From sequence record OR805292.1: 64,000 bases of DNA. One strand, written 5' to 3'. Both the position numbers and the translations under genes were made by a program. A model generated the notes under the pieces. The model ran no database searches and had not been told where the DNA came from. It was given only the letters and a program-made list of their open reading frames with translations. This document shows positions 42,709 through 63,385 of this stretch, piece by piece; position 1 is the first letter of the stretch; each line of letters opens with the position of its first letter.

Positions 42709-42826
42709 GCAAATAAGACTAATTCTTATTTGCGTTTGTAATTTCATTTATTATTGCAAATAAGACTAATTCTTATTTGCGTTTGCAACGAAAAAGAATA
42801 TGCAAATAATAACTAATCTTATTTGC
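42709..42826. promoter_or_regulatory. Cluster of three 25-bp GCAAAT-N13-ATTTGC palindromes (Fur-box-like)
   Basis: 42709-42733 and 42756-42780 identical (GCAAATAAGACTAATTCTTATTTGC); 42802-42826 is a variant. Confidence 0.8.
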
Positions 42827-42998
42827 ATTTGCACTGCCTAGTATATGGATTGGTAGCATACTTGGAAATGGATAGTAAATAAGTAGTTGATTTGTTTATA
42901 AATTTTAATTCTACATCGTACTGATTGACCTTGCTATATATAGCTCGCGCGCGTATACAAGATGGTAAAAAATAATTTAAAAATATTTTAAAAAATGC

Positions 42999-43122
42999 TT
43001 GACTTTCCATTACTACGACCTTAAAGTGCGAACTGTAGACGCAGTGTGTAGAGCGCTACATAGTAAGCAACGCAGAAAGTAAACAAAAAATGCTTGACGC
43101 AACGCAAACTAGGCTCTACACT
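42999..43122 (+). promoter_or_regulatory. Tandem sigma70 promoters with A-tract UP elements
   Basis: AAAAAATGC-TTGACT-17-TAAAGT and AAAAAATGC-TTGACG-17-TACACT. Confidence 0.8.
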
Positions 43123-43205
43123 GTATACAAGCTTAAGGGGTAAGTGCCCCGAAAGTGTAGTAAGTAAACAACATAATCCTTCCATCAGCTACAGAGGTAT
43201 ACAAC

Positions 43206-43910
43206 ATGTCCGTACATATCACTCGTCAACGTACCGACAAACAGCACGTCCTGGCACTGGCAATCAACGGCGTGGTCATCGGCCAGACTATGGCTACCTA
43301 CACCACCCCGAGCAAGCGCACCTGGTCAGCGACCGCCGAAGTCGAACTGGCAGACGGCACCGTCGTACAGTTCGAGCAGAAAGAAGTGTTCAGCGCGATC
43401 CGCATCACCCGCGAGATCGAGCAGGCGCTCGACGGCAAGGAACTGGCGGCCAAGTACACCCCGGAACCGAAAGTTCCCGGGCAGAAGGGTCCGAAACCGC
43501 TCACCGACGAAAGCCGACTCAGCAACGCGATCGCGATCGTCAAGGCGGCCATCACCCACACCGGCTTCGACGAAGCTACCCTGGTGTTCGACGGGGTCGA
43601 CAAGGCCAACTTCGAGCAGAACAGCACTTCCGTCGGCAACAAGCTGCGTCGCCTGGGCTTCGTCTTCGAACTCGGCGCCGGCAAGGCGAACAGCGGCAAG
43701 GGCTTCCTGATCAACCGCAAAGCGCAGGCCGAGGCAGAAGCTGCCGAACGCAAGGCCAAGCGCGACGCCGAGAAGAAGGAGCGCGAAGAAAAAGCGGCGG
43801 CTGCCAAGCGCGAAGCTGACGAACGCAAGGCCAAGCGCGACGCCGAACGCGCCGAAAAGGTCGCTGAAAAGAACGCAGCGATCGCCGGGGCGGCGCAGGA
43901 AAGCAAGTAA
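43206..43910 (+). CDS. GC-codon protein with charged Ala/Lys/Glu-rich tail, possible DNA-binding protein; paralogue of 61898-62380
   Basis: GAGGT SD; shared N-domain (NGVVIGQ...VFSAIRI); duplicated ERKAKRDAE. Confidence 0.85.
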   Translation: MSVHITRQRTDKQHVLALAINGVVIGQTMATYTTPSKRTWSATAEVELADGTVVQFEQKEVFSAIRITREIEQALDGKELAAKYTPEPKVPGQKGPKPLTDESRLSNAIAIVKAAITHTGFDEATLVFDGVDKANFEQNSTSVGNKLRRLGFVFELGAGKANSGKGFLINRKAQAEAEAAERKAKRDAEKKEREEKAAAAKREADERKAKRDAERAEKVAEKNAAIAGAAQESK

Positions 43911-43925
43911 TTGCCCAACTGCGCC

Positions 43926-43952
43926 GAAAGGGGAGCAAATTGCTCCCCTTTC
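43926..43952 (+). terminator. GAAAGGGG-type terminator
   Basis: GAAAGGGGAGCAA-a-TTGCTCCCCTTTC. Confidence 0.88.
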
Positions 43953-46869
43953 TTCATGACCATATAATCTATATACTACTGTGTCTTTAACTATATTTTC
44001 TATATCAGCTAGTTTGTATTCAATAACTTGGTATTCTATGCCAGCGACACAATGCTGTTATATAGACATAATAACACGCGACGCTGATATTTTTATAACC
44101 TATCCATTTTATAATAACATACTTGTATCTAAAATTATTTCTAATACAATACCTGTAGGAAGTTATGAACACTATATTAGAGATATGTCGTGGAATAAGA
44201 AATGATTATATAACAGTCAATAATTTTACATATGACTACTATCTAGAGGTAAACACACCTGCGTTTTCTTTAATGATAATTATTCCGACAGTTCCTATAT
44301 TAGACAATACTTGCATTACTTTTATAAAAAAGTATTAATATGAATATATTCTTTATATCAAACGGTCTATCTAATATAATATATCACAAAGATAATTTGA
44401 TACAACATAATATACATATGATAGATATTGAGATTAATAATTCTACTGTTATTTGGCTTACATATTCTTTCAATATTACTAAAGTATCATTTAAATATAT
44501 TATCTAATTCATTTTCTTATTGTACGAATTGCAATTGCAAATTACTCTTATTTGTAATTGCATATAAACAATCAGTTGCTATTAAAAGTATTTGCTGTTA
44601 ATATATTATATAACAGTGCAATTGATATTTTAAAATACAGTGTGCAATGCATCTTACATGTATTAAAATTTGTGTGTTACTTGGTTTGCATTAATGATTA
44701 ATATACCTCTCTTACAGTACAAAACTAATACTATAGACAATTTGTTCGGGGGATCGTTCTCGAAAAGTATACAAGTGAGAGATAACAGTCTAATTATACT
44801 TGTTAGTTTTTATATAGAAGGTTCTAAATATAGAAAATTTGTATACAACAAAGAATACCTCGAAGGGATTTCAGCATATGCAAACAACAATCGTTAATGC
44901 CCTAAAATCTATTAATGTAAAGTATTCGGATATATTTTACACAAATGGTAATTTGTGTAATACTGTTACAATACGAAATATTCGCAAAAACGGTAAATTA
45001 GATTCGGCAGAACAAATTAATGTTGAATCAGTTGTGAGCAATTATTTGATTCAAAAAGATTTAAATTTGCCCTTTTCTATTCAATGGGCAAATAATGCTT
45101 GCTGTGAAGAGTATACTACACTTATTCTCTTCTTCAGAAAATAGTGTATGATTAGATTAAAAAGATATGTTCAATTGCATAGCATATACAGATTGTCTTA
45201 CTATGCGCACGGCATACATTTTAGCAAAACAAAGAAGATAATGCTTTACGTAGGAAACGCAGGTCCCGTACCCGTAACATGACAGTATATAGCGTTAAAA
45301 TGTGCATTTTTTGCACGATTTTGCGGGGTATGCGTTACAAGCAATACACACATACTGCTTTTAAAATGCATGCTTACATGCGCTTTGTAGGGGGTTTAAA
45401 ACATGCTTAAATTAGTTACCACTGTGCTATACAACGTCTGTGTAGCTTCGTTGATAATGATTGTGTTTGTATGTGGTATAAATTTAGTAATGTATATAGA
45501 TAACAATACTGACAATAATCCAGTTGTTATCTTTATTTCCCTTCTATCGGTTATTTGGGGCGTTGCGCGGATAAGCTATATGTTTGTTACTATCCAATTT
45601 CAGTCCAAGAAATAAAAGTATTGGTAACATATGATAGATAAAAACGGAAATACAGAAGACTTTGATTTTGATAAGGCATGCACTATAACTGATCTGTCTG
45701 TTCCTCTTCAGCAAAAAATACAATCATATAAATTAAATAAAATATTGGTTATGGTTGCAATCCTTAAATATTCGAATATAAAACAAGAAATTGGATGTTT
45801 CGCTATCATATGGGATCATATAATAAAAATAACAGTTGAAGTAAAATGCAATCCGTATGCAGAAACACACATACTCATGCATGCGCATGTATTTTCTAAT
45901 TCCGATTCATGTACTCATAGTGTATTGCTGAATTACAGAAACAAATATTTACCCACTAATTATTATAATTAATATGGAAGATATTCTTAAAATTGCTAAA
46001 CTAATCGGGTACGTAAACATACATGCAAATAAACATTTTCAGTATGTTTTTAACAAAGATATGGAACATGTATGTGTTAGTGCCAAGACTAGGACAAGTA
46101 TGAACGGAATAAAATACCTTTATGTAGTAATGAATATATATTATATATATTGCCATCAAGAAAGTGTTGCCGTTATATTAAACGAAGTAAACACTGATGA
46201 AATGCCTGTATTAGATAATCTTTATGCTAAACTTAATGATTTAGTTACACATAAATCTGTTATAAAATTTAAATATACAGAAATAACACAAGAACAAATA
46301 GATTTGTTGAATAATAGTGAAAGATATATAGTATATTTTGACTCTAATTTAGAATACGGAATAGCTTCGTTTTATTAATTTTGAGGAATATATGAAAAAA
46401 CAAACAGGTTTTACAGATTGGCCATTGATTAGTTTAGGTACAATTATTATCTTGTGTGTATGGGTATTAATTCTACAATATACAGAAATAAATGTACTAG
46501 AAGAAAAATGTAACAAAGTAGGTGGTATTTTTAATAACACCGTTTGCATACGGTCAGATGCAGTTATTAATTTAGATAAGGTAAAATAAAATGCCAAAAC
46601 TTTACGTTAACAAAAAACATGATACCATTTATCTTCAGTTAGATCATTTCTCATCTAATACTGTATCTCCAATTAATTACAACGAAGATGTAGAATATGT
46701 AATTGATAGGATCCGTAGTCTGCACAAATCCGGCTTCGGATTTAGTCATATGAATACTCTACAAGAATATCTTACGGCAAGAACAGAACAGGATAAGAAG
46801 TTTAAGCTTAAAGTAGAAGACTTCGAAGTAGTATCATTTAAGATTTAAAATTATACATAATCAAAGTAT

Positions 46870-46898
46870 TTGACATTTGATGTGTATACTAGTATAAT
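46870..46898 (+). promoter_or_regulatory. Perfect sigma70 promoter with no downstream ORF
   Basis: TTGACA-17-TATAAT. Confidence 0.92.
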
Positions 46899-46904
46899 TT
46901 GCTC

Positions 46905-47520
46905 ATGCTGTCGTAACAGCTACTTTGTTCCATTCACAAGCAGCTCTGTTCCATTATTGGATATTGGTAGTAGAAACTATCCCCATCGTGCCCACAGTAT
47001 TGTTCTGTTAGAGACAGGTTAAAGCATACAAAAGTGGGTTATTTAAATTATGATTTTGGGTGCTGAAGTATAGTCGTTAGACAAGGATATGTCTAATGTT
47101 GCAAAGGACTATGCGAAACGTATTATATATCTTATCCGATATTAGATATGTAATAAAAGGATGAAGCTCTGGTAGAAACAGAGTGTAATTCTTGCTTGTA
47201 TTTCACACGGATATACAAAAGAATATACACACCAACTTCAGCATTGATGTGAATTTTCTAGCATAGGTATATAACATCGATGTTCCGGGATTCATTGGAA
47301 ACAATGAGAGAATGATGTAATCTGAGGAAAAAGGTCCCCGCCTCGTCCATATTACGAAATGGTTTTGAGTACTTATGCCCTCGTCCTATATTGGCATATG
47401 GGTTTTATATTCTCCCGTAATTACGGGAGAATATAATTTCCTGAACCTACTTGGAAATGGACGCTTCTGCTGTGCTTCGCACAGCATCTAAGGGCCTTCA
47501 CCCTTACCGCTAAGAGCAAG
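46905..47520 (+). ncRNA. Candidate ~620-nt structured RNA
   Basis: Nested long-range helices (TGCTGAAGT/ACTTCAGCA, ATAGTC/GACTAT, GTCCAT/ATGGAC) and many hairpins; no ORF of 60 aa or more. Confidence 0.65.
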
Positions 47521-47763
47521 AGCAAAAGCAATATAATTACAAATAAGAATTAATTATTGTTTAGTTTTATCGTAATGAATATGAAGATAAAAACTAAACA
47601 ATAATTCACATGTAGCGTTAGCTACTGTGAATATCTACTATAGTATTAACCATATATGTATACAAGGGCATAATATGACTGTTACTTGTTGACAATTTGA
47701 TATATGTGTTACACTTCGTATATTAAATATACATTACAATGTTTTGATTATTAGGAACATACT

Positions 47764-48900
47764 ATGTCATTATCTCTGACTGCTGCTATTAATCGATATA
47801 CTAGTCTAATAGAAGAAAATTTCAAAATAAATTATCTGAAGAATTTTGAGTCAGGATATATCTCATATAAATTACTAAGAAATAAAACATTCCTACATAC
47901 TGAAATATCACATAGTCTTGATTATATAAAGGTAATTATTTCTTATACATATGTAGAAAATGATGTCAAACTAGATGAAAAAACACCTGTTGTACATTCG
48001 TATATTTCTATTACTGATTGCTCTAAATTTAGAGTAGGAGATATAAGAATGTTTTACGATTCAGTTCCTCGTGGAAATGTTTTTAATATTAAAGAGAATA
48101 CTCAAGTTAGTTGGGCAACAGCTAATATTGGAATTCACGAGAATCCGTTTAATCTTAATTATATTTCGAACAATAAGTATATTCGATTAGAAACAGGAGA
48201 TATATTTGTCTGTATTAATGATAGTATGGTAAATGAACTACAAGAACATATGCATGTTCATTCTATATGTACTGACAAAACAAAGAAGTTTTATGTAAGA
48301 GAAATTGATTTGAATATGCTACATTACAAAAAACACATTATGGAATAAAGAATGAACTACAAAGCATTAGAAGTATTTTATTTCTTTCTAGAACATTACA
48401 AGGTAAATCCAGTTGCCGACTTGGAATTTAAATTCGAACCCTCAGGTAGTGATGATCAATCTAAGCGCAAGTCATCACTGTCGTTTGTTAAACGTATTGG
48501 TGTTCTTACCCTTCCATTCAACGAATTATACGAAGTTCAGAATCGATTCATGTCAGATCTTCGAGAAATGAATGTAGTATATAAGATAGGATTTAATTAT
48601 AATGCATTCAACGTATTAGCACCTTTGTATGCAAGATATGAAAAGAATGTAAAAGAATTTCGTCGACTTTTAAAGAAATACTCAAGTTTCAACGAAGTAA
48701 CAGAATATTACAAAAAAGCTAACAACATGTTACCGGACAATGTATACGAAACAATGAAGGAAGATTTTTCATTGTTTAACGACGTTACTACAAAGAGGTT
48801 ATCTGAAATAAAACTTTGTTATCCTAATTGGCAAGTATGGGATTCTGAACATCCCAACTGGGAAACAATAAATCAACGTTATAAGAATGCAAAGAAATAA
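47764..48900 (+). other. Two hypothetical ORFs (47764-48348, 48352-48900)
   Basis: AGGA SD, chained ORFs, terminator at 48911. Confidence 0.75.
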
Positions 48901-48910
48901 TGCATATTTA

Positions 48911-48976
48911 GAAAGGGAATTATAATTCCCTTTCTTTTTGGATCTATATTAGCAAATGCTAATTAATCTTATTTGC
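48911..48976 (+). promoter_or_regulatory. Terminator plus 25-bp palindrome junction
   Basis: GAAAGGGAATT-ata-ATTCCCTTTC then GCAAATGCTAATTAATCTTATTTGC (48952-48976). Confidence 0.8.
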
Positions 48977-49612
48977 ACAAATTTAATCCTATTGTGTTTT
49001 CTATTTTGAAGTGCTACATTACATGTAGTTGCATAAAACTATACACAGGAGAAATGATATGTGGGATATCAAAGACGGGGATGATATCGAAGTCGAAGCA
49101 GTTATGGATGAACGAAGCTATGAGTGGACCGGCAAGTTACGTATCATCCAATATCGGACCCTTCAATCAGCTCAGTGGCGTGTTATTATCAATATAGTAG
49201 AATTTTGGAGTCATTCTACTGAAAGTATACTGAACGAACTTGGTATAGAAGCTAAACACATCACTAAAGGATATGCCACACTTAGCATGGTTCGTTTCCC
49301 GGAGGTTGATTACCTATTTAGTGTAACACCCGATAATGCAGATTATGTAACTGTTAACCACAGTGCAGTAGACATTACTGACAGTTGGTTTGTTGCAAAA
49401 AACATAAAAGCAGTTATGTATCATATGGGATCTGAAATCCAGATCACTCCGTGGTTTGTGCGTAAAGATAGTGGCGAGTCAAATTTCAATTGTATTGATC
49501 GATTAGTAGCTCTAGTGAAAGAGAATACTGATGTCGACACGTATCAGTACATCAAGATAGGTTGTCCTGAGGACAAGTCATTTTACTTTGCGTGGATAGA
49601 CAAATAATTCGT

Positions 49613-49649
49613 TTGCTATACGTACTAATACGTTGTATACTGTTAGTAC
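49613..49649 (+). promoter_or_regulatory. sigma70 promoter of the GC island, overlapped by an inverted repeat
   Basis: TTGCTA-17-TATACT with CGTACTAA-N-TTAGTACG spanning the spacer and -10. Confidence 0.7.
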
Positions 49650-51734
49650 GCATAGTAGAAGTAACACATAACGTTTTGATTTAATGGAGTTCTAACATGA
49701 AAAAAGAATTTGAATCGTGGATTCGGACTCGTTCTCCGGCGCCGCTTGCATATAATGCAGCCGACGACTTGTACCTCAACCCGCATGTTCAGGCACGCTA
49801 CGAAGCCTGGAAAGCCAGTCGTATGGCACTAAGGGTAGTGTTGCCGAAATCTCACATGGCGTCGGAATACGCGCCCAAAACAAAAGTTTTCAATACAACC
49901 GATATGGAACTGGCCCTCCAAGAAGCCGGCATCGAAGTGTCGCTATGAAGACGTTTTTGAAGATGCTCGCATATTGCGTGCTTGGGACATCAATTGGCAT
50001 TGCCATAAGCCAATGGTTCGTCTTCGTCCTAGAGATGAGGCTTGGCACCGCGCTCTGGTACATCGTTGGCCTTGGTCCTGTGCTGCTTGTGTTTTGCATT
50101 TTGGGCAGCTTCCTTCACTGGCTGATTCATAAGCACTTAGAGAAAAAGTAATGACCGGAATTGAGGTAGTGAAATGAGCAGACTAACAGCCGAGCAAGCC
50201 CGTGACATAGCGCGAGCGAAAGACGATGTCGATGCCATCCTTAACGACATCGCCAAAGCAGCAGCAGAAGGAAAGTACGTGTACACTACCCGCGCCTATG
50301 GGTTCGGCATCGGCACCTCGCGGCGCAGCGAAGCGATCCTCAAAGTGTTGCGTAGCCTCGGCTACGACTGTGCGGTGCATGCTGAGGGACGCCAGTCTGT
50401 TGACCTGTGGCTTGAAGTGAAATGGGGAGACAAGCCATGACTAACAACCCCGGAGATTCAAAAATGATCGTAGAAAACACCAAGCAAGCCGCCGAAGACT
50501 TCAAAACTTCCATGGCTAAGATTTTTCCGAATTACATCGCCGCCGCGTCGGTTTCCGATAACCTTGGTCCGTCGATGACAATTTCGTTTGCGAATGTCGG
50601 TTGCGCTTCCGAAGCCCCGAACAGCATTCTGATGAATGCGAGCGGTTACATGCGCTTTATGATGCATTTGTGTGACAATCGCGGGAATGTATTGCCGGAA
50701 GGTTCGCCGGTCGAAATTGAGCTGCTAACGTGGTCTATCCCCTATCGTTCGGAAGTGATCAAGTTCCGCAAGATCAAGGGCAAGACACCAGCCGAAGCTA
50801 TGCAAAAGCTAGTCAAGTGGTTTGAAAAAAACGCCGAAGCTATCCGGGGTCTGTAATGGTCTCCACGTAGGACACGCAGAATGAACATTGTGTTGGACAA
50901 ATTGCTGTTTGGCGGTTTCATCGACCAGCACCGCAATGAACTTGCCCAGCAACAACTGAATCGGTTGTTTGCCAAGTACGGTGAGCCGAAGATTGGTATC
51001 ACACGGGCATGCTTTCTATCTAAGCATTACGTCCTGAAGTTCCCGATTAATGACAGGGGTGAGCGGTGCAACGATTGGGAAGGTAGCTGTTCTGGCAGCT
51101 ACTTGGCACGCGGACGCTGGCTAGAAATCGGAGGCTTCATTTGCGTCATGCAAGAGCGTTTGGTTGAAGTGGATTGGAAGAACAACACCTGTGCAAACTT
51201 TCCTGATTGGGTAGGCAGCATAGATTGTGGTCAAGTCGGCTACGATAAACATGGCGTTCTGAAAGCGTATGACTTTGGGTGAAGCATGACCATCAATTTG
51301 TTTGTTGTCAACACAAAGAACGAACCTATCCCAACCGACCACAGGTCGATACTCCGCTATCTTGGCCTTAGCCTGCACACGCAAGGCTGTCGCGTATCTG
51401 CCAAATTCAGCAGCGGTAAGTTGAAGCTGAACAACTACAACATCGAATTTTTTCACATGGCGGACGAGAACGATGAACTTCGCCGCCTTTGCTCCTGCGC
51501 TAAGCAATATAACCTCAGCATGACACTGCAAGCGAAGGAGGAGATCACATGATCTGTGTAATCGCTCTAGTCCTTGCCTTCTCTGGTCATCCCGGGCTGG
51601 CCATTTACGCCTGCCTAATCGCTTACATTTTGGGTGACTAACATGCGCATCGTCAGCACTCCACTTCGCAAAAGCGCCCGTAATTGTGAACACGCCCTTG
51701 CAAAGGCTATTACCGAAATGGCGGAGATGATTCC

Positions 51735-52049
51735 ATGACCGACACCAACAAAATAAAAAAGCTAGCAAAACTGGCTACGCCGGGTCCGTGGTATGCGACC
51801 TGGGAGGAAGGCGATGACATTGCATGGTCGAATCTGTTTCCTGTAATCCAAGCGGACAATGGCGAAGTCGTGATCGGTAACGAAGGCTTTTACAGCGATT
51901 TGGAGCAGGACAAGGCTAACGCCACTTTCTGTGCTGCCGCCAACCCCCGAGCCGTCCTCGACTTGCTAGACGAGATCGACAAACTCAAGGCAGAGAACGA
52001 GTCGCTGCGCGAGTCTGTCGATCGACTTGCCGAGATGCTGCGATCTTAA
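51735..52049 (+). CDS. Ead/Ea22-like protein
   Basis: KLAKLATPGPW ... NATFCAAANPRAVLDLLDEI. Confidence 0.75.
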   Translation: MTDTNKIKKLAKLATPGPWYATWEEGDDIAWSNLFPVIQADNGEVVIGNEGFYSDLEQDKANATFCAAANPRAVLDLLDEIDKLKAENESLRESVDRLAEMLRS

Positions 52050-52073
52050 CGAAATCCTCAAAGGAGCTACCAA

Positions 52074-52301
52074 ATGATCGACATCAACAAAATGAAGAAG
52101 CTAGCGGAACAGGCTCTCGATTGTAAATTTGATAGCTATGTGGCGTTAATAGCATCAGCAAAACCACAAGAAATTCTCAGTCTTATAGCTGAGCTGGAAC
52201 AGCTAAAGGCAGAGAATGCCAGAATGCGAGCAGCACTACAGGCTGTTGAATCGGAGCTCACCCATATGACATCTACGAACAACCCGACTGGGAAACAATA
52301 A
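52074..52301 (+). CDS. Ead/Ea22-like short paralogue
   Basis: MIDINKMKKLAEQA ... ASAKPQEILSLIAELEQLKAEN. Confidence 0.6.
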   Translation: MIDINKMKKLAEQALDCKFDSYVALIASAKPQEILSLIAELEQLKAENARMRAALQAVESELTHMTSTNNPTGKQ

Positions 52302-53054: not shown

Positions 53055-53079
53055 GCAAACACTAATTAATCTTATTTGC
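53055..53079. promoter_or_regulatory. 25-bp palindrome (Fur-box-like)
   Basis: GCAAACACTAATTAATCTTATTTGC. Confidence 0.75.
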
Positions 53080-53244
53080 ATTTGCTATCTTGTATAATAG
53101 AAACGACTTCTAAACATGGATATGGGACAGAAAACTTAGATAAGATCTCTGTTACAAATTTTTGAGTTACAATGCATAGTAGTTTTGCTATTATGTGTTT
53201 ATAGAAATGTAATAACAGAACTAAAACATAAAGGATTGTCCGTC

Positions 53245-54896
53245 ATGAAAAGTTACGCAAAGTTTTATGTAGGGACAAACATTTATGATGCCGAAGTACC
53301 GGATTTAGACATAAACATGCCAGATGCAGAACTTTTCGAAGTAGCATTGCATCAAATGGCAGTACAGTGGTCTAGCACTGCCGGGCATCCGCATCACAAG
53401 GATGCAATGCGTAAAGACGGAAAAGTAGCCCGGAGTAAAGAACGGGTGTATATTCGCGGCAACGGCTGGTCAATTTCGTTGCATAGTCCCGAATTTGTAG
53501 AAAAACATTCGGCATACCTTGCCGCAGCAGAATGGAAACTACTAACAGATTTGCTTGTATTTGACACCTGCTGGAACGCTAGTTAGTAATTCTCTCTACA
53601 CAGGAGAACGGTAATGAATGATATCAGTGTAAGAAATATGCGTTATATTGTACGTGGTTTTGTTACTCATGCAATTGCCCAGGGTTATTCAGTTTCCGTT
53701 TATGAAGGGGGCGATTGGGCGATCGAGAAGAGTACTTCTGTAAAAGATATTATGAATTCTATCATGTCCACCGACAGCGATACATTCTGTATCTATAATG
53801 CAGAGAAGGTGAAGGTAGGTCATGTGTATTGCATTTATTGCAATAGTGATTACGAAGTTATTGCAGATTATACCGATTCACCTCTTATGCAATCGATTCT
53901 CGTTGAAGCTCTACGCAGAGCAAATCGAATAGAAGAACTGAGCTGAGAAAAAGAAGCAGGAATTATTCCTGCTTCTTTTGTATGTTACAAGTTAAACAAG
54001 ATTATTTTGCATTTGCTATGTAATAATATTTTCTATTGAATTAAATATTATATGTGTTACTATATGCACAGTGCTGTTAAACAAAGCGATAAATTAATAG
54101 CTATGGCAAATAAATTACATATCATCTGTGCAAAATGTGGTAGCACTCTTATAAACATAAAAATACCAAAAGTATGTGCAGATGATCCATTAAATGTAGT
54201 ATATTTTTCGTGCGAAAACTGTAAGGAACTTACAGGCATATACGAATGGGCAGAAACAAATAATCGCAAAGTAGTTGACGATAGGTAAGAAGTAAATGGA
54301 AGCATATACAGATTGCCCTATCCTACTGATCGGTGATGCTCCGCACGAAGAAGCACCTATAAGAAAAATAATTATAAAAGGTTATGATTTTAAATATATC
54401 TGGGCAGTATACTATTATATGGATTTAATTCCTATACGGGTTCAGATAAAACGCTGTTATGTGTACGAAACTCCAGGTAGAGTAGGTCATGTAAAATCTA
54501 TTAGAGAAGAAGTATTAAGAAAACGCAAAAAGAAACAACGTGACATATGTGAATACGATACATATCAAGATGAAGACGATTTTTGGAAAGGAATGTATTA
54601 AAATGCATAATACTCGTATTGTTGTTCGACTCAATGTTATCACTCCTATTTCAACTGCCAATGGCGTTGTAGTTGATTCAGTAGTCCGCGGGCATCGAGC
54701 AGGCATTAAGCAAGGCAAACAAATGTATCATGTTTATTCTATTCAAACAGGCGAGTATCTCGGTTTGAAATCAGAAGACGACGTAAGCGAAATTAAACCG
54801 TCTTCGTATGAAGAATTTCTTACTCCGAGAACAATTACTTCAACCGAAGTAGAACAAATTAAATCTTCTTTCGAATGGTACGAAGCTAACGTTTGA
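53245..54896 (+). other. Hypothetical cassette ORFs (53245-53586, 53614-53946, 54052-54288 Zn ribbon, 54296-54601, about 54603-54896)
   Basis: SD-preceded ORFs; terminators at about 53947-53978 and 54900-54925. Confidence 0.7.
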
Positions 54897-55131
54897 TATA
54901 AAGGGGGAATAATTCCCCCTTTATTTTTCTTTTATAAACATAAATAATTCGCATTTGCACCGAAGATGCTTTATAACGCATAAATTTACATAGCTAATAC
55001 ATACATATTGCTAACGTTAAAAAGCGCGTTATATAGCTTATAATTGCATATTGTGCAATGCATTTGTTGGTGTTATATTAAACATGCGCAACAATCAACT
55101 ATACAAAAACATTTATTATGGAGATACAACA

Positions 55132-55422
55132 ATGAAAAATACACTGTGTCTCGTTGCATTTTTGGGTCTCACAGTAATAGCTCACACTTATGCAGCAGAT
55201 TCTGCAAATAAAGACGTGAGTACCCTCACTATGGAACAGGATCTAGAAACATATCTAAACGAAGAGTTTGGATTAACAGGGAAAGTTAATTGCAATAATG
55301 CTGTTAACGGAATGTTCGAATGTGTCATGCACGACGGACAAAAGAAATACATGTTTGCATGCAATGCAGAAGACAGTGTATGCATAGTAGTATCTGTCCC
55401 AATTAAAGGAATTCGGTTATGA
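55132..55422 (+). CDS. Exported Cys-containing protein
   Basis: GGAG SD; signal-peptide-like MKNTLCLVAFLGLTVIAHTYA; four Cys in the mature part. Confidence 0.65.
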   Translation: MKNTLCLVAFLGLTVIAHTYAADSANKDVSTLTMEQDLETYLNEEFGLTGKVNCNNAVNGMFECVMHDGQKKYMFACNAEDSVCIVVSVPIKGIRL

Positions 55423-55829
55423 AAAAAGCTCTTTCATGTGTAATAGGTATTATTGTTCTGTTACTAGGCGTATTTATGGTAGATAATCCTGCAATAGGAT
55501 TAATGCTAGGAGGGTTAGTAGGCAGTTATATTTTCAGCATAGGCGGAGTAATTCTATGTGTTATATCGTTTATGATATTTGCACTTGCCTTTGTTGAGAT
55601 GAAATGAATGATTTATTTAAGTATTTGGACATTTGTATCTATAATAGTATCGATATATCATAATATTTTAACTATAAAAATGCATAAACAGGTACTGTTG
55701 TATAAAGATTATACTTTTTATAAGGAAAGATTAGATTTTGTCTGTAATAGTTATATATTTTTCAATGTAATATTCTTCATTTTCATTGCATGCGTTACAA
55801 AATAGATCACAAAAAGTTTTAAAATTCAG

Positions 55830-56349
55830 TTTACAGCATGCATAGTTTTACGTATTATAAACACACAAAGCAATACAGCATAACGCATTGTAAGCAACAC
55901 TAAACGGGAGACACCGTCCCGCAAGCAGCCCGCCCGCGATGTTCGCGGGCTGCGGCAAACAGGTGTACAAGGTCTAGTAACGTGGAAGGCGCAGCATACC
56001 TTTCCCTAAATCGGAAATTGGTCAATGACGTACCTGCCCCTGGACACTGCTAGACCTTGCTGCTACAAGCGGGACAGCTACAAAGGTACACTGTATGTAT
56101 CTATGCTTTACCCCGCTTTGTAGCAGGTCTTAAAAACGGTCTACTGGCATATGCTTTAGTGCTAGTAGGAATCATTAACCTACAACTATTATATGCTTCC
56201 TGGAGGTGAAGAGTATGCCGCCGCAGCATTAAATATACATTATGATGATGATAATTATGAATGCCGAAACACCGCTTCGATTCGTTTAAAAGACAGATGT
56301 CTGAATCGAATGTTTTTGGGCAAAAAGGTCCCTTAGATGGGATTTTTTT
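55830..56349 (+). ncRNA. Candidate ~485-nt structured RNA including its promoter and terminator
   Basis: TTTACA-17-TATTAT (55830-55858); helices GTCCCGC/GCGGGAC, GCAGCCCGC/GCGGGCTGC, CAAGGTCTAG/CTAGACCTTG, GCTACAAAG/CTTTGTAGC; hairpin plus T7 at 56328-56349. Confidence 0.65.
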
Positions 56350-56363
56350 GCGGCTGCTAACTA

Positions 56364-56436
56364 GCAAACGCGAATTAATCTTATTTGCAATTTAAGAAAA
56401 ATACCAGTTGACTGTAGCTTGCTAACATAGTACATT
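56364..56436 (+). promoter_or_regulatory. 25-bp palindrome followed by a sigma70 promoter
   Basis: GCAAACGCGAATTAATCTTATTTGC (56364-56388), then TTGACT-17-TACATT (56408-56436). Confidence 0.8.
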
Positions 56437-56465
56437 TAACTCATAAATCCGCAGGAGTAGCAGTT

Positions 56466-58924
56466 ATGTCGCTGAAAAAGAAACTTTTAAATTCTGTGCA
56501 GATTAAATATTTCGGCAACATTTATACTTACATTTATGATGCCGTTTATGACGTTATTTATTTTGATAACCAGCAAATGTCTTATGCCGAATTTGAAGAG
56601 GCAGTAGACTGTAAGCTAGGAGAAGTTCTGTGAATGAATATGTTGATACACACAGAGCTAAAAGAATATTAATAATTTCTTCTATATGTTTTTTTGTAAC
56701 TGGCATTCTGATAGGATACAGCCTGGCGTCTAACTCTGAGTCTGCTTCGTTATATATGCAGTATAAAGAACTTGTAAAGTCTTGCGAAGCAGAATTGCCA
56801 AGAAATGAAAATTGCCAAGTAATCGTATATGCTATACCAACACCTGAAGTAGAAGAAGAGAAACTAGAAATACAAACAATTCTCAGAGGGGTCGAAATAA
56901 AATGAGCGTATACTGTAATTGCATAGCATGCGGTGGAGATGATCCGTATGCTGTATGTGAAAATGTGTTAATGGATATCCAAAAGCACAAATATAATACT
57001 GGTCCCAGCTGGGGGCTGGTAGTTGCGGCAGTATTGTGTTTGGTAGGAATGGGATTAGCAGGTAACGCAGCACTATCTGATAAAAAAGAAACACCATGCG
57101 AAACTACACAACAAAAATAAGAGGTGTATAATGACTGACAAAACAACAGACATGTTGGTAGATGAATTTCTGTGCGAGCGTGCATCTTTTTCTCCGTTTA
57201 GCGAAGGTGTTCATGCAGCTAAACTAGGGCAGAAATATACAGACTGCCCGTATACCAAAAATGAGCCGTATGAACGTAACGAATGGATTCGAGGACATCA
57301 AATGTGGCATGATTATTCTGTTCAACAATACAAATAATATTCAGAGGATATTATGAAGAAACTATCTATGTGCGATTTTGCCAAATGGAAGGCAAACTAT
57401 TACAGCACCAATAAATCCGGTCAGCCACTCCGTCTAGGACAAGCATTTATTAACGAATTTTCCGAACAGGGTGATATGCCTCAGCCAAATCTATATTATG
57501 AAGAAGACAATGCAACTGCTGAGCTTATCATTCTAGAAAAATACATTATATACTAAGGAAGTAGTAATGTATCTTGCACACCTATTCGCTTTGGTCCCGT
57601 CTATGTTTGCAGTATTAATTAATGCTGTCTTTATCAAATACGGTTTGGGACCTGCTGCTATAATAGTATTTATGGCATTAGTTGTAACTGTAACAGGAAT
57701 TGGGTCTGTAATAGATATGATGCGTGCATTGTCTGAAGTAGACAATATTATTGATAGATAGTATTTATGTATGCATAAGAGAACTTATGAAACTCAATGA
57801 AGTTACTACAATTTCTGATCTAGACAATATTCCTGTCACTGACAAATTTATAGTTGTCGGCGAAGATATGGTAGGTCTTGCTTTTATCGATAACGATGGA
57901 AAGCTAAATGATGGATTCTTTTTTGAGTGTACTTATACTCAGAATAAGGAACAAATATTTAAAGCTGTTCAACATTTAAAAAAACAAGTAGATGAATTAA
58001 ATAATTGTAATAAAGAGAAAGTTATAGCACATGTCATGCGAGCTCCCGAGTTTGCATATGTTTGGGTATATTTTGAACAAAAACAATAGTTCTATATTTT
58101 TGATATATGCAAACGCAAATAATTAGAATTTGCAGAATCTGTTACAAACTTTCTGTTTATATCAAATACAATCATGCTATAATAGTTTATAATAAAAATG
58201 TAAGCATACTATCATTGACAGAACTGCTGTTCCAATTAGTAAAGGGTTTCATTGAGCAGCATGACATCCGTGCCTACAGCAAGCACCAAAAGAACAAAAA
58301 TGAAGTTCATTCTTTGTCTAAAGATTAAGTTTGCTGAGAAATTTGATAAGAAACTTCAACTGCTTGATTATATCAATAGTGCATTTATCATGCATTGAAC
58401 AGAAACGAAGTACTCTTTTATCTACGAGGAAAAGCAAATGAAATACAAAATCATTCTTCAAAACCGTAGCAATGGTGTTGTCGCTGAATTTTCGGTAGAT
58501 AACGAAATCAATCCCGAGATCATGGATACTTCTATTATCGTTCATGAAGGGACGTCGTATATGTATACCGGCTCGGGTGGTTCTTACTACGATACCATTT
58601 ATTTTAGTGAAATATATAAGACCATTAACACGACAGACTTGTCGTTGCTATAACAGAAAACGCTTTACAATAGCTCTAAATGTGCTATTATGTAGTTGTA
58701 CATAAAACAACGCAGGAGATTATATCATGCGTAGCACACTCGGAGTAGAACATGCATCGAGAGAAATTCTTTCTGCATGGGTTGATGTAATGCAGCAACT
58801 CAACTGTGAGCATTTCTATAGCGAACTGAAAGACAATGCAGTTCGCTTAGATTTACAGGAATATATGTATACTGAACGTCTTGTTCAGTATTATACAGAT
58901 CTTCCAGTCACTAATGCTGTTTGA
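56466..58924 (+). other. Operon of small hypothetical ORFs, several membrane-associated; includes untracked 56466-56633
   Basis: AGGAG/GAGGT SDs, chained ORFs, terminator at 58956. Confidence 0.7.
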
Positions 58925-58955
58925 CAGCCACGCTGGGCGTGAACTACATTTATTA

Positions 58956-59020
58956 GGAAAGGGGTTTTAAGCCCCTTTCCTTTTGAATGTTAAGTGTAAG
59001 TGCAAATTAATCTTATTTGC
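58956..59020 (+). promoter_or_regulatory. Terminator plus 25-bp palindrome junction
   Basis: GGAAAGGGG-ttttaag-CCCCTTTCC then GTAAGTGCAAATTAATCTTATTTGC. Confidence 0.8.
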
Positions 59021-59103
59021 TTGTTACAATTTAGTTCTTGAATTCACACATAATAGTATGTATAGTTTTAATATATAAGATACCAACATGCGAGGTTGTA
59101 AAA

Positions 59104-60525
59104 ATGAAACTTCATAATATGAATGGTAATATTTTTATTCGGTTTGAAGTAGATACTTCGTCGGATAATTTTGTAGAAAAAGTTTACGAAGAAATTATGC
59201 AGCTTCCTGCAAAATTGTATTTCGAAAAGATAGAACGTAGAACTTGGTTCTGTAGCTTTTACACAGGCTACGACGAATTGGTGGAATTCGTCAATGAAAT
59301 AAAAGACAGAGTTAGTTCAGAAGGTGTTTTCTTTGACAGGCCATTGCAGCTAACTCTTATCAATTCGGGCGGGGTAGAAGTAAATATTTCCGATATAGAA
59401 CCGGATCTTCACTATCTCTTTGATAACGATATTACAACTACAAAACTTATCTCTATGGAAGGATCCTGCAATATGGTAGATTTGCTCATGTGCGAATGGG
59501 TACCTATTAGCATTCGAACTTCTATTGCTAAGGCATTTACTGACAAATTTTTATAATAAAATACCTGTTGACGCATATAGCAATATGCGCAATAATATGC
59601 ACGAAAGCAAGAACAGATCCAAATAACCTTTTTATAAGAGATTATATTATGTCTAAGTATCTTTCTTTTAGCGTAAACGTAGACATGGACAACACTGGTT
59701 TGTTGAAATGGTTGCGTCCTACCACCGGTCGGCTGGATGGTTTTGAAGAGAGTGTTAAAAACTTCGTTTCTTCTTTCCGCTCAGTCGAGTCGAGCCCTAC
59801 GGTGTTTCAAGTTTACGATGATGATAACCAGCCGTTGCAAGTAAGCAACATGAGCTGCTTCTTCCGGTACTTTCCGGTGTATGGTATGTGCCTTGCACCG
59901 GGTTCGATGGTCAGGGAACAATATCGTCGGGAGATCCTCGACTATACTACTGACGAGTTCTGTTCATTCAGTAACTACTTCAGTGACGGCAAGGCCATCC
60001 GCGGCGGGGCAGTATTGTGGTGGGATGTAGAGAAAGACTTGGTATGGTCTGTTAGTCCCGAATTGATTCGCCTCGTATATGCCCGCTTGCAAAGCGATCT
60101 GGACATCGGGTGGTATCATCTCGGGCAAGAAGTTATGGCTGTAGTTCCTCTTCGTTCGTATCCCAACGATGTTGCCAGATGGAAATATGTACAAGGTAAT
60201 ATCTGCGGCATCGACGATCAAGTGAGCATTCGCAGCAACGTCGACGGTCGAGTCACCCGGCTTAATTGGGAATACATCGTGACCCAAGGGGGATAATATG
60301 GGCGGTCTTGCTAATATAGTTGCATGCATAGCTTCTATTGTTGCAATTGTTACTGGAAATATCTGGTATTTTATCGCACTGTTGCTATGCACAGCATTTA
60401 TGTCGCCCGAACGAAAAGGATCATTAATTGATGTATTTTCGGTCATTGTCGGGATTGGTGCTATATTTAACGGAGACATTGCATGGGGCATAGTGTTCAT
60501 AGCATTAGTGATAATAGTTAAATAG
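59104..60525 (+). other. Hypothetical ORFs (59104-59556, 59649-60296, 60298-60525 membrane protein)
   Basis: Starts moved to SD-preceded ATGs; terminator at about 60526-60555. Confidence 0.7.
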
Positions 60526-61310
60526 AAAGGAAGGGGGTTAAACCCCTTCCTTTTATTGTAGGTGTTAAATGTCATCAATTTTTTATCTTAGCAAATGGAC
60601 AGAATACATAGTAATTTTAAACAATAAGAGAATAAGGTTAAGTACAGCGAAATATTCTATAGGATATGTATCACTAGAAACACCTCGTCGCACATTTTAC
60701 TGGACACTTTTTAAATGAAATACAATAATCATATCTAAGTAGATACCTACCTTTATATCAAAAACCATTTTATGAAATATATTTCCTAAATCATATTACA
60801 AAAGTTATATTTGAATTTTGGATTCTTATCTCAACCTTGCATTGCAATATAAAATGCGAATATGAGTGTGCTATATGTATTTGCATATGCATGTACATAC
60901 GTATAAACGTATTAAGAAATACAATTTATTTTATCCTATACAATTATCTTTAATACCTATATGTTGTTTGATAATAAAAGTATAATAAGTAAAAGATATT
61001 ATCCATTATATAATGGTTTTAATATATTTCGCTGTAGTGTTGGATTTATATATTTTTCATATGATAAAATGTCATTTATTCACGACATATTCATGCAAAC
61101 CGTTTCGTTGTTCCTTACGACGTTATTATTGTTTTTACTTATAACTCCGTTATATTATATAGGATTGAAAAATCCAGTCAATATAACTACATTTGTTTCG
61201 TGTTTAATAATAACCATTCTTATAACAAGTTATTATTTTATGTCAGTTTTGACTTATATATTCTGTATTACTGTTCAGTCAAAAATTTATAAAAGAAAGA
61301 AATAATTTAG

Positions 61311-61418
61311 TTTCAATATCTTTTTCTTTTTCAATATCTTTTTCTTTTTCAATATCTTTTTCTTTTTCAATATCTTTTTCTTTTTCAATATCTTTTTCTT
61401 TTTCAATATCTTTTTCTT
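61311..61418 (+). repeat. Six perfect copies of an 18-bp pyrimidine-rich unit
   Basis: (TTTCAATATCTTTTTCTT)6. Confidence 0.95.
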
Positions 61419-61438
61419 TATCTTTTATCATTGCAAAT

Positions 61439-61549
61439 ACAAATAATAATTATTCTTATTTGCATTTAGTGATGTAAATAATTCTTATTTGTAATTGCGA
61501 TTAATTCTTATTTGCTACAATAGATAGAATAAGAATAATTCACATTTGC
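61439..61549. promoter_or_regulatory. Cluster of three to four Fur-box-like palindromes
   Basis: ACAAATAATAATTATTCTTATTTGC (61439-61463), GTAATTGCGATTAATTCTTATTTGC (61491-61515), TAGAATAAGAATAATTCACATTTGC (61525-61549). Confidence 0.75.
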
Positions 61550-61897
61550 AATGCCGCTAAAAGCGCTGTAAGCGCTGTATGCTGTGTAGTAGTGCTAAGC
61601 AATGCATTAGTACAGCTACGCGCACAAACGCTGTTATAAGCGCTTGTAGCGCGTTTTAGGGCCCATGCGCATGCGTATACCTGTAGCTTTACATAGTAAA
61701 ATGCAGAAAAGACGTCGTCTATTAACGTGCCTGTCTTAATAGAAATATACAATTGTACAATACCAGCGAAATCCTACACACTACAGACATGCAAACAAGC
61801 AACGCGCTTGCAAGCATAAAAGTTTTTAAAAAGTAGTAGACACAGTGTAGCATCCCTAGTAAGCTACACACATAAACAACACAACGGAGTACAAGCT

Positions 61898-62380
61898 ATG
61901 TCTAATGTAAGCATCCCTGCTGTAACGGTAGAGAACATCGGCACCCTGCGCATCGTGCGCACCGCTAACAAAGAGGTCGGAAGTGTGCTCGACCTAAAAG
62001 TTAACGGGGTAGTAGTAGGGCAAGCTTTCCCGCTCTACAGCACAAAAACCCAGCGTAGCTGGAACGCGAGCATGCACGCTACCGTTAACGGCGTAGAGGT
62101 GCAGTTTGCACAGGAAGGCGTGTTCAGTGCAATCCGCATTGCACGGGCGTTCGAGGATGCAGTAAAGCATGCCGTTAGCAACGGCGAACAAGGGCAACCC
62201 CTCCCCGCGCCGGCGGCGGCAGAAGCGCAAGCAGAAGCGCAAGCAGAAGCGCAAGCAGAAGCCCCGGTAGCGCAGACCGAGGATGCGCCGGAGACCCCGG
62301 CAGCCGAAGCTAAGCCCGCCCGCAAAGGCGGCAGCAAAGGCGGCAGCAAAGGCGGCAGCAAAGGCGGCAGCAAAAAGTAA
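61898..62380 (+). CDS. GC-codon protein with (AEAQ)n and (KGGS)4 tail; paralogue of 43206-43910
   Basis: GGAG SD; NGVVVGQ...VFSAIRI shared domain. Confidence 0.85.
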   Translation: MSNVSIPAVTVENIGTLRIVRTANKEVGSVLDLKVNGVVVGQAFPLYSTKTQRSWNASMHATVNGVEVQFAQEGVFSAIRIARAFEDAVKHAVSNGEQGQPLPAPAAAEAQAEAQAEAQAEAPVAQTEDAPETPAAEAKPARKGGSKGGSKGGSKGGSKK

Positions 62381-62395
62381 GCGCTGCTAACACAG

Positions 62396-63385
62396 GAAAG
62401 GGGCAACTGCCCCTTTCCTTTTATGTCCTAGTTGTAAACGCAAATTAATCTTATTTGCATTTGCACAAGTCAATCTCCGGTTGCATTACTGCGGTAAGAT
62501 GTTAGTATATATGTAGCTATACGGAGTAATTGCTATGAAGCGCAAGTACCTAAAGGCACAGTTCGAGCATGTCAGTGCCGGGCGAGTTGCAAAAGAACTC
62601 GACGAGAAGTTCAATTTCGTTGTAGGCGATAATGTACACTACTGGGCCATCTTCGAAACTAATGTCAAACCCGAAGTTCTACAAAAGGCAATTCATGACA
62701 TGAACGGTGGTGCTTACTGCCATGCATATTCTATTCCGTATGAGGATGTAGAGGAGTATCTCTAATGCTCTACTATCGCGATGTTTATGCAGGTGTTTGC
62801 TGTTAAACTTGTATAGCCGGCACCAGGTCGCATATAACACGCCTAGCCCCATGCAAACTGCGGACATGATCCATTCACGCCTGCAGCGTATGTTCGAAGA
62901 ATTCGGTTGCAAGCCCGATGGTTGCTCTGCTAGCATGTACGAGGATAAGACGCACATTACACTAGCCTGGAGCAAGTAAATGGATATGTCGATTGTGAAC
63001 AAGCGCTTCGAGAAAGAACTAGCGCTGTTTAATGTCGAAGTTCTCAGTAAGCGCACAGTGAATCATATAACGAAACCGAACATCGAAGTTTCGTTCAAAC
63101 TAAAGGGTCATACTACTGAAGAAGAGATGACCACTGTTACTCAGCTCGCACGTCCCATTATGGAGTATGTAAGCGGACGTAGGGTGGTCTGGGCACATAC
63201 CGGTCTTTGGCGCTCAATGAAAGACGACCTCGAAGTAGCAGTGCTGACAATGAAGTTATCCAAACAATAAGAGAAAGGGGCAACTGCCCCTTTCCTTTTA
63301 TGTCCTAGTTGTAAACGCAAATTAATCTTATTTGCATTTGCACAAGTCAATCTCCTGTTGCATTACTGCGATAAGATGTTAGTAT
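62396..63385 (+). repeat. 113-bp direct repeat (62396-62508 and 63273-63385): terminator, palindrome, promoter
   Basis: 111/113 identical by manual alignment; period 877 bp. Confidence 0.95.
62535..63270 (+). other. Gene cassette between the 113-bp repeats (62535-62765, about 62765-62979, 62980-63270)
   Basis: GGAG SD and chained short ORFs. Confidence 0.7.

Follow-up and report, generated by a model that had tools for sequence, protein, structure and literature searches.

The operator of the ferric uptake regulator, the Fur box, is written as GATAATGATAATCATTATC and has alternatively been read as a 7-1-7 or a 9-1-9 arrangement and as an array of NAT(A/T)AT hexamers. Fur boxes lying over single prophage genes are already known, and the iron-regulated stx1 gene is a further example of a Fur-controlled gene on a temperate phage. 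The promoter-early stem-loop (PeSL) was described as a composite of a terminator and a promoter that stands beside orphan genes and mediates insertions and deletions, or indels (Arbiol 2010, PMC2839356; Comeau 2014, PMC4122927). In this work, a stretch of 64,000 nucleotides of sequence record OR805292.1, referred to as the window, was analysed with respect to a 25-bp palindrome that is repeated in it, and the finding combines an operator sequence of the Fur type with a junction behaviour resembling that of PeSL. We consider it rather probable that the palindromes are Fur boxes, that is, predicted sites for the Fur protein of the host, set in repeated junction modules which separate early, mostly accessory gene cassettes.

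Positions 42000-64000 of the window were 100% identical to positions 166000-188000 of Pseudomonas phage Cassandra (OR805292.1). A window position equals the record position minus 124000, sites beyond the window are given in the same (extended) coordinates, and the whole genome of 288167 nt was scanned. Cassandra is a PA5oct-like jumbo phage of the genus Wroclawvirus, the family of which contains one genus. The same stretch was 96-97% identical to PA5oct and to nine further Wroclawvirus jumbo phages infecting Pseudomonas aeruginosa. In PA5oct, the homologous stretch lies inside positions 1-39080, which are annotated as a long terminal repeat (39,080 bp, doubled read coverage). The terminal-repeat placement comes from this annotation of PA5oct, and the Cassandra boxes map to about 8.6-36.6 kb of the PA5oct repeat. 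That region contains small early genes, mostly without a known function, and two non-coding RNAs (ncRNAs) defined by RNA-seq. The PA5oct paper reports a dependence on the host RNA polymerase, 32 sigma70-like promoters and 36 terminators, and the 25-bp palindrome is absent from its accessible text. The base composition of the phage was about 30-33% GC, compared with 66% GC in the P. aeruginosa host.

The palindrome was originally pointed out in an earlier note on this DNA as GCAAAT-N13-ATTTGC. When at most one mismatch was allowed, this pattern gave 11 matches in the window against 0.50 expected (a maximum of 2 in 100 shuffles), and the array was thus found to be real. Its confinement was confirmed by a position weight matrix (PWM) that was built from the phage sites and run over the whole 288-kb genome. 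Copies in the window were taken as strong at 29 bits or more, and twelve of them reached this threshold (Table 1). Past the window, the copies at 64031, 67304 and 70655 scored at least 29 bits as well, and those at 65727 and 68996 were weaker (together OR805292.1 188031-194655). About 17 boxes were counted as strong overall, 12 in the window and 5 beyond, with about ten weak copies in the same stretch. The strong boxes were restricted to OR805292.1 166709-194655, a single 28-kb stretch of the early region, and the top PWM score in the remainder of the genome was 17.7. The exact 10-mer TCTTATTTGC occurred 23 times in 160-210 kb of the record versus once in the remaining 238 kb. The statement that the left 42 kb of the window carries no copies held, as the PWM maximum across positions 1-42000 was 8.6. 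The list of individual sites needed some correction. Eleven of the twelve main positions were strong and the twelfth, at 61525, was weak (19 bits) and inverted; among the copies listed as degenerate, the one at 44537 was better placed at 44531 and proved strong, those at 54000 (53992, minus strand) and 54942 (54934) were weak, and 47540 was only a half-site.

The form of the motif was GCAAAy-N3-AATTAWTCTTATTTGC, in which the right half, AATTAWTCTTATTTGC, was almost invariant and the left half (GCAAAy and three variable bases) was looser. The information content was 1.17 bit per position within the 25-mer compared with 0.12-0.20 in the 40 nt on each side; because of this sharp drop in the flanks, the 25-mer was regarded as a discrete unit and not as the remnant of a longer repeat. 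All but one of the 17 strong boxes pointed in the same direction as the genes. An ideal box consists of four in-phase hexamers around a central base, GCAAAT-AAGAAT-x-ATTCTT-ATTTGC, and a fifth hexamer is frequent. The phage copies often carry additional hexamers in phase (ATTTGC-ATTTGC, ATTTGC-GTTTGC and GTAAAC-GCAAAT), and these are of a kind that occurs in bacteria too. Copies detectable by BLAST, 7-9 per genome, were carried by 11/11 Wroclawvirus genomes. In more distant phage relatives, the full pattern gave 0 matches in a viral contig collection, and a 16-mer gave single chance matches only.

The likeness to the Fur box was scored in the register used by the earlier note, AATGATAAT-N-ATTATCATT, with 18 positions. 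All 17 phage boxes matched it at 12-15 of the 18 positions (mean 12.8). The GC-matched 41-mer controls from the rest of the phage had a mean of 9.5, with 4.5% reaching 12 and 0.9% reaching 13. The counts given earlier for the sequences at 61442 (15/18) and 48955 (14/18) were recounted by hand and agreed. An initial leaning against Fur, as unsupported, had come from an any-register count against GATAATGATAATCATTATC (11.7/19 versus 10.0 in AT-matched sequences); the register was wrong, and this view was overturned by the rescoring and by the matches in metagenomes.

The search pattern GYAAAYNNNAATTAWTCTTATTTGC was derived solely from the phage copies. It was found in metagenomes on 32 contigs with a GC content of 25-52%, one copy on each. 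In about 18 of these 32, the palindrome stood just upstream of an open reading frame (ORF) starting with MYVCLCHG, apparently overlapping its promoter, and this ORF was a BFD-like [2Fe-2S] ferredoxin (bfd; Pfam E = 3e-16). Some copies on the remaining contigs adjoined a TonB-dependent receptor Plug domain, a DUF4198 protein or hemP (HemP). With a slightly relaxed pattern, at least 120 loci were retrieved from alpha-, beta- and gammaproteobacterial reference genomes. These matches were not attributed to chance, because some of the organisms have 62-74% GC while the 25-mer is AT-rich. The 150 ORFs flanking the bacterial sites, among the matches listed, included 28 with Plug, 5 with SBP-type solute-binding, 4 with Bfd, 3 with FUR, 3 with TonB_C, 3 with FeoA and 1 with FeoB domains. 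The sites flanking FUR would represent autoregulation of fur, and the SBP-type domains are of the kind found in iron ABC transporters. In the host genus, the site GTAAATTAGAATAAATCTTATTTGC of Pseudomonas sp. SID14000 preceded an ECF sigma factor gene by about 20 nt; ECF sigma genes are classic direct targets of Fur in pseudomonads.

The most frequent bacterial form among the matches listed, GCAAATGATAATCATTCTCATTTGC, corresponded to the textbook Fur box extended at either end by one hexamer. The agreement extended to positions that the pattern left unconstrained, the bacterial sites listed reading aatGCAAATga.AATcATTCTCATTTGCAttt and the phage sites AatTGCAAATgCgAATTAtTCTTATTTGCAtttgca. The phage copies departed from the bacterial ones mainly in a central T, in CTT instead of CTC, and in the left inner hexamer, where GAT was replaced by GCr or AAG. 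The very same variants were found in bacterial sites beside a TonB receptor gene and beside the Pseudomonas ECF sigma gene. The claimed likeness to the Fur box was therefore borne out by the excess over the controls and by the retrieval of promoters of classic Fur-regulon genes with a phage-derived pattern. Because of these two lines of evidence, the assignment of the phage boxes to the Fur-box sequence class, as predicted members at the weak end of its range, was considered supported.

A typical junction was composed of a terminator, the box, a sigma70-like promoter, a ribosome-binding site and a gene, in this order. The terminator often had the form GGAAAGGGG-loop-CCCCTTTCC followed by a T run. 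The placement of the box just after a terminator and before a sigma70-like promoter, as proposed earlier, was confirmed: a terminator lay 8-22 nt upstream of at least six copies, further terminators occurring beyond the window, and for five copies, four of them in the window, a predicted promoter followed at 15-22 nt. The distances from the box to the predicted -35 element were 15, 17, 19, 22, 22, 53 and 84 nt, the last two occurring beyond the window. A generic promoter scan of the AT-rich DNA performed at chance level, with 86 sites versus 82.6 expected in shuffled sequence. Modules of a terminator and a sigma70-type promoter were repeated across the variable region, which is the anatomy of PeSL. 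Two clusters of boxes were present, one of three boxes at 42709-42826 and another of about four within 61433-61549, and a tandem repeat preceded each.

The boxes had also been described as intergenic without exception. This was the case under plus-strand gene models, but in the Cassandra record short or minus-strand ORFs overlap the boxes at 42802, 56364 and 63311. The record places minus-strand ORFs over GC-rich cassettes (window 43298-43963 and 61540-63581) where PA5oct has plus-strand genes, and the PA5oct plus-strand gene at 43206-43910 is backed by virion mass spectrometry. The minus-strand calls, as a result of which some boxes seem to lie in coding sequence, look like artefacts.

The proposal that the boxes mark cassette junctions was examined in an alignment of five genomes, Cassandra versus PA5oct, Ettore, Callisto and PAC2, in which the indel junctions were read individually. 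Four indels among these sister phages had junctions in a box or within 12 bp of one, in agreement with the proposal. The segment 62509-63272 was missing from PA5oct; in Cassandra it is flanked by direct repeats of 113 bp with 98% identity (62394-62508 and 63273-63385), each comprising a terminator, a box and a promoter, which gives a unit of 877 bp. The segment 64057-64754 was missing from Callisto, and the crossover fell inside TTCTTATTTG, a sequence that a copy near 64750 has in common with the box at 64031. The segment 65279-65739, bounded by copies at 65302 and 65727, was missing from three relatives, and the segment 70692-71058, present in Cassandra only, started 12 bp past the box at 70655. 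Seven other junction areas of the region were not at boxes (49.7-52.8 kb, 55.6, 58.2 and 64.6 kb). The shared box thus appears to provide homology for cassette exchange, as with the PeSL of T4-like phages, and would account for the swapping of cassettes in this fast-evolving region.

Table 1. Boxes and associated features in window coordinates; bits are PWM scores, and fractions are matches to the Fur consensus.
Feature	Position	Strand	Score or basis
30-bp tandem repeat, 3.2 copies, directly upstream of cluster 1	42614..42708	+	
Fur-like box 1, cluster 1, GCAAATAAGACTAATTCTTATTTGC	42709..42733	+	35.6 bits; 13/18 to Fur 9-1-9 consensus
Fur-like box 2, cluster 1, duplicate of box 1 in 47-bp tandem unit	42756..42780	+	PWM
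Fur-like box 3, cluster 1, followed by extra in-phase ATTTGC	42802..42826	+	37.1 bits
Fur-like box, degenerate, GCAATTGCAAATTACTCTTATTTGT	44531..44555	+	29.1 bits
Intrinsic terminator, 16 nt upstream of box 48952	48910..48935	+	
Fur-like box GCAAATGCTAATTAATCTTATTTGC	48952..48976	+	38.2 bits; 14/18
First gene downstream of box 48952, probable gp52 counterpart	49059..49607	+	
Fur-like box, top PWM score, followed by ATTTGC; TATAAT 13 nt downstream	53055..53079	+	42.8 bits
Weak inverted copy	53992..54016	-	16.0 bits
Intrinsic terminator, 9 nt upstream of weak box 54934	54898..54924	+	
Weak copy	54934..54958	+	15.5 bits
Terminator-like hairpin and T run, 3' end of ncRNA002 region, 14 nt upstream of box 56364	56327..56349	+	
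Fur-like box GCAAACGCGAATTAATCTTATTTGC	56364..56388	+	40.3 bits
Predicted sigma70 promoter TTGACT-17-TACATT, 19 nt downstream of box 56364	56408..56436	+	sequence reading
Weak copy	58109..58133	+	16.3 bits
Intrinsic terminator GGAAAGGGG..CCCCTTTCCTTTT, 11 nt upstream of box 58996	58956..58984	+	
Fur-like box GTAAGTGCAAATTAATCTTATTTGC	58996..59020	+	35.0 bits
Predicted sigma70 promoter TTGAAT-17-TATAGT, 17 nt downstream of box 58996	59038..59066	+	
18-bp tandem repeat, 6.1 copies, directly upstream of cluster 2; copy number differs among relatives	61311..61419	+	
Fur-like box 1, cluster 2	61439..61463	+	34.8 bits; 15/18 to Fur consensus, best in the phage
Fur-like box 2, cluster 2	61491..61515	+	30.7 bits
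Weak inverted copy closing cluster 2	61525..61549	-	19.2 bits
Intrinsic terminator, first part of duplicated junction module	62394..62419	+	
Fur-like box, GTAAACGCAAATTAATCTTATTTGC plus ATTTGC	62434..62458	+	40.2 bits
Predicted sigma70 promoter TTGCAT-16-TAGTAT, 22 nt downstream of box 62434	62481..62508	+	
GC-rich cassette, present in Cassandra and lacking in PA5oct, between two 113-bp modules of 98% identity	62509..63272	+	
Intrinsic terminator, second module copy	63273..63294	+	
Fur-like box, second module copy	63311..63335	+	40.2 bits
Predicted sigma70 promoter TTGCAT-16-TAGTAT, second module	63358..63385	+	

Some further features of the cassettes and their surroundings were recorded. Cassettes with 44-51% GC occupied the window positions 42830-44000, 49700-52300 and 61540-64000, the last continuing to about 66000 in extended coordinates. 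The segment 49913-50157 shared 84-92% identity with temperate P. aeruginosa phages such as vB_Pae_BR153a, and this composition and similarity point to genes captured from other phages of the same host. The ORF 61898-62380 contained perfect 12-bp tandem repeats at 62219-62262 (GCAGAAGCGCAA x 3.7) and 62322-62374 (GCAAAGGCGGCA x 4.4), which would encode short repeated peptides. Two near-identical promoter-like elements, at 42999-43027 and 43094-43122, each followed AAAAAATGC (aaaaaatgcTTGAC...), and both lay upstream of the virion-protein gene 43206-43910, within a long GC-rich leader. The two ncRNAs, ncRNA001 (window 42338-42573) and ncRNA002 (about 55900-56350), each made up 1-5% of the PA5oct reads and ended at terminator-like hairpins just upstream of box cluster 1 and of the box at 56364, respectively. 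Elsewhere in the window, a cluster of 12 tRNA genes was located at 14736-18968 (Met x3, Leu x2, Ser x2, Asn, Thr, Arg, Pro and Gly), and this set was identical to that reported for PA5oct.

It was proposed that the iron-loaded Fur of P. aeruginosa would occupy the boxes once the phage DNA enters the cell, and binding of Fur to most of the boxes is judged likely from their sequence. From its upstream position, the protein could form a boundary after each terminator, relieve the silencing of AT-rich DNA as at E. coli ftnA, or mildly damp the promoter. In the case of ftnA, upstream Fur sites are reported to counter the silencing by H-NS (Nandal 2010, cited in PMC6922518). Provided that binding takes place, a positive or insulating action from upstream is quite conceivable, although not to be expected with confidence, titration of Fur as the main effect is a possibility to be held with reserve, and classical repression is doubtful. 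Promoter occlusion of the classical type was considered the least likely of these actions, because 15-84 bp separate the boxes from the predicted -35 elements downstream of them and because the two terminal-repeat ncRNAs, according to the main text of the PA5oct paper, are highly transcribed all through infection. Following genome replication, Fur would also be soaked up by the boxes, of which each repeat holds roughly 17 strong and 10 weak ones.

Several observations weigh against the boxes being working Fur operators. The bacterial sites retrieved by the phage pattern had a mean of 14.7/18 among the matches listed, which did not include P. aeruginosa chromosomal boxes, and the phage boxes were thus about two matches weaker than bacterial Fur boxes. 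Most phage boxes read CTT at a place where CTC is usual in bacteria, so that the C conserved in the central 7-1-7 unit is lost. A degenerate left half and a uniform orientation in 16/17 copies are unexpected for the site of a symmetric dimer. It was also observed that no box overlapped a core promoter, the promoters being sequence predictions, and that the distance from the clusters to the next predicted promoter, that of a GC-rich cassette, was about 170-270 bp for cluster 1 and about 290 bp for cluster 2. The box columns seem to be under constraint within the genus, but this effect was marginal: among five genomes, 22 of the 412 box columns varied versus 125 of the 1497 columns of flanking intergenic DNA (odds ratio 0.62, p = 0.047), and the test was weak because these genomes are only 3-4% divergent. 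The transcriptome paper on the PA5oct host names NAD, psl, nap and Pf1 genes in its main text, where iron is not mentioned. In addition, PA5oct DNA probably has, according to a preprint, a modified G in GA or GG contexts, which may affect the inner hexamers and would leave the outer GC untouched.

The boxes could bind Fur and yet serve mainly as decoys, thousands of copies per cell titrating the regulator and switching on the iron uptake and the PrrF response of the host, with a supply of iron to RNR and to the radical-SAM enzyme QueE. The number of boxes per repeat suits this explanation, and so does the presence of the repeat twice in packaged DNA according to the PA5oct annotation; both RNR and QueE are encoded by Cassandra. 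It is further favoured by the lack of core-promoter overlap, by the two clusters of 3-4 boxes that stand with their tandem repeats far from promoters, and by the T5-like phages, which keep strong Fur boxes in an untranslated region without a gene to regulate. In the standard Fur titration assay, genes under Fur control are derepressed by Fur boxes supplied in multicopy. For another P. aeruginosa phage, PAK_P4, a strong induction of the siderophore and haem uptake genes of the host, by an unexplained mechanism, has been reported (PMC5563952). However, decoys would not have to be uniformly oriented or to stand at almost all operon boundaries, host transcripts amount to only about 7% of the total late in infection, and the PA5oct paper, in which 698 host genes changed between infected cells at 25 min and uninfected cells, names no iron genes in its main text. 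We consider titration as the main purpose of the boxes unlikely. Still less probable is an operator for a phage-encoded protein, made early or brought in with the virion, or for another host protein, timing the shut-off or activation of the early cassettes, in which case the likeness to Fur boxes would be a coincidence or a mimicry aimed at those of the host. As with phage operators, the motif is genus-specific and limited to one temporal region. Its asymmetric conservation and uniform orientation suit an element linked to transcription, the CTT and the central T, nearly invariant in the phage and a minority in bacteria, could mark a distinct specificity, and nearly all early proteins are without an assigned function. 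The likeness to bacterial Fur boxes, however, spans all 25 bp, both flanks and the extra in-phase hexamers, and the exact phage variants stand beside bacterial TonB receptor and ECF sigma genes. Moreover, searches against Pfam and PHROG revealed no DNA-binding domain in 17 distinct early proteins, out of roughly 100 small early ones.

The boxes might finally be read by no protein at all and be the conserved core of PeSL-like modules that spread by duplication and offer homology for recombination only. The four indel events at or within 12 bp of a box, with the Callisto crossover lying within TTCTTATTTG, agree with this, as do the nearly identical modules around the 877-bp cassette unit. Cassandra encodes recombination proteins of the T4 type (UvsX, an SbcCD-like nuclease and SSB), and PeSLs of T4-like phages act likewise (PMC2839356, PMC4122927). 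Yet homology explains neither a fixed 25-mer amid wholly different terminators, spacers and promoters nor its resemblance to the Fur box, and the seven indel junctions away from boxes tell against it as well; this explanation was given very little weight. The predicted Fur sites at cassette junctions were retained as the preferred interpretation.

Other candidate functions of the box were examined and rejected. A middle-promoter activator box of the T4 MotA type, which would have a -10 element at a set spacing, was dismissed since TAnnnT at +13 occurred in only 2 of about 15 boxes, which is close to chance. No suitable partner element at the right spacing was found for the box as a sigma70 or sigma54 promoter. 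An RNA hairpin, a terminator or a cruciform was set aside, as the boxes also follow terminators; the pairing is not conserved, because the left arm is degenerate and the right arm fixed. The boxes did not fit the consensus sequences of IHF, Fis, PsrA or GacA sites. Neither DnaA nor LexA boxes were enriched, with DnaA-like sequences at 6/35 in 13.5% of the genome and no perfect DnaA box. The only protein of the region with a DNA-binding annotation, Cassandra_0403 (phrog_624), resembles a DenV-like endonuclease V and is not a likely regulator. Its gene lies at 69875-70291 in extended coordinates, is preceded by two weak box copies, and is annotated as a putative endonuclease V in PAC2.

At least one of the cassettes headed by a box is probably an anti-defence cassette. 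The gene 49059-49607 is the positional counterpart of PA5oct EST35_0052, and its N-terminal 80 residues are shared with small proteins of about 230 Pbunavirus genomes. In a preprint, gp52 of PA5oct is described as a homologue of 14-1 gp88, an inhibitor of END defence nucleases (anti-END1). The gene probably corresponds to gp52, where gp52 is equated with EST35_0052 by inference, and it is because this counterpart fits the anti-END1 protein that the cassette is assigned such a role.

The canonical Fur box, used as a BLAST query, was found in 1015 phage records, many of them T5-like, at up to 12 places each. In Escherichia phage DT57C (KM979354.1 6946-7596), four Fur boxes with 16-17/18 matches were located in the untranslated part of the left terminal repeat. 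Half-sites of the form AAATGAGAATCATT stood in a run in the same region of DT57C, which also contained DnaA boxes and a perfect LexA-type palindrome CTGT-N8-ACAG (TACTGTATATTTATACAGTA). The analysis of the T5 left terminal repeat by Davison (bioRxiv 10.1101/866236) covers the repeats and the DnaA boxes and mentions neither Fur nor LexA. We put forward, as a tentative and rather doubtful extension, that virulent phages with long terminal repeats, the PA5oct-like and independently the T5-like ones, carry arrays of host Fur operators in the DNA that enters first, which would act both as a Fur sponge and as a sensor. At a single copy, the arrays would tie the early cassettes for anti-defence and takeover to the iron state of the host, and at hundreds of copies they would strip Fur from the chromosome and force the import of iron for phage DNA synthesis.

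A search of the full-text literature for Fur boxes together with lytic phages, phage genomes or T5 returned no report of PA5oct-like or T5-like arrays as Fur sites, and a search by the Fur-box sequence string for published P. aeruginosa Fur boxes returned primers only. If the host Fur does bind, a lytic phage would have wired about twenty early transcription units, one of them probably anti-defence, to the master regulator of iron. This would be a new viral route to sense the physiology of the host or to reprogram its metal uptake, and the induction of iron uptake by another P. aeruginosa phage, hitherto unexplained, would gain a mechanism. It would further bear on phage therapy, as infection sites are iron-poor, and would assign a function to the long-puzzling palindromes of the T5 terminal repeat.

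Compared with the proteobacterial Fur box, the palindrome has the same hexamer architecture, and bacteria, a Pseudomonas among them, carry 25-mers nearly identical to it at promoters of bfd, TonB-receptor, hemP, feoA, tonB, fur and ECF sigma genes. Unlike the bacterial boxes, the Fur-like ones of Cassandra form an array of about 17-27 copies in a virulent phage, lie upstream of the predicted promoters and not over them, and have a fixed central T and CTT with a degenerate left half. The control of temperate-phage genes by Fur, exemplified by sitABCD of lambdoid coliphages (PMC6969025), likewise places a phage-borne gene under the host iron regulator through a Fur box. In those cases, however, a single box covers the promoter of one iron-related or toxin gene of a prophage, whereas in Cassandra an array accompanies many unrelated early genes of a strictly lytic phage. 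The position of the Fur-like sites, well upstream of the promoter in AT-rich DNA of a kind that silencing proteins would cover, is reminiscent of ftnA. The host has the H-NS-like proteins MvaT and MvaU, and a comparable action may be envisaged purely by analogy.

The PeSL cassettes of T4-like phages (PMC2839356, PMC4122927) consist of a terminator hairpin with a G-run and a C-run, an AT-rich stretch and an early promoter of the sigma70 type, and the same parts are found in the Cassandra modules. Like PeSL, these modules flank small genes without an assigned function in a variable region, and indels between close relatives end in them. In PeSL, it is the promoter and the hairpin that are conserved, whereas the most conserved part in Cassandra, which is only a distant relative of T4, is the operator-like palindrome between the hairpin and the promoter. 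The injection stop signal region of T5 is similar in having arrays of repeats and palindromes that match sites of host proteins, within a long terminal repeat that carries the genes expressed first. The T5 sites, however, are gathered along with DnaA boxes and a LexA-like box in a non-coding stretch of about 0.7 kb, whereas the boxes of Cassandra are spread over 28 kb at operon boundaries, and DnaA-like or LexA-like boxes are not enriched there.

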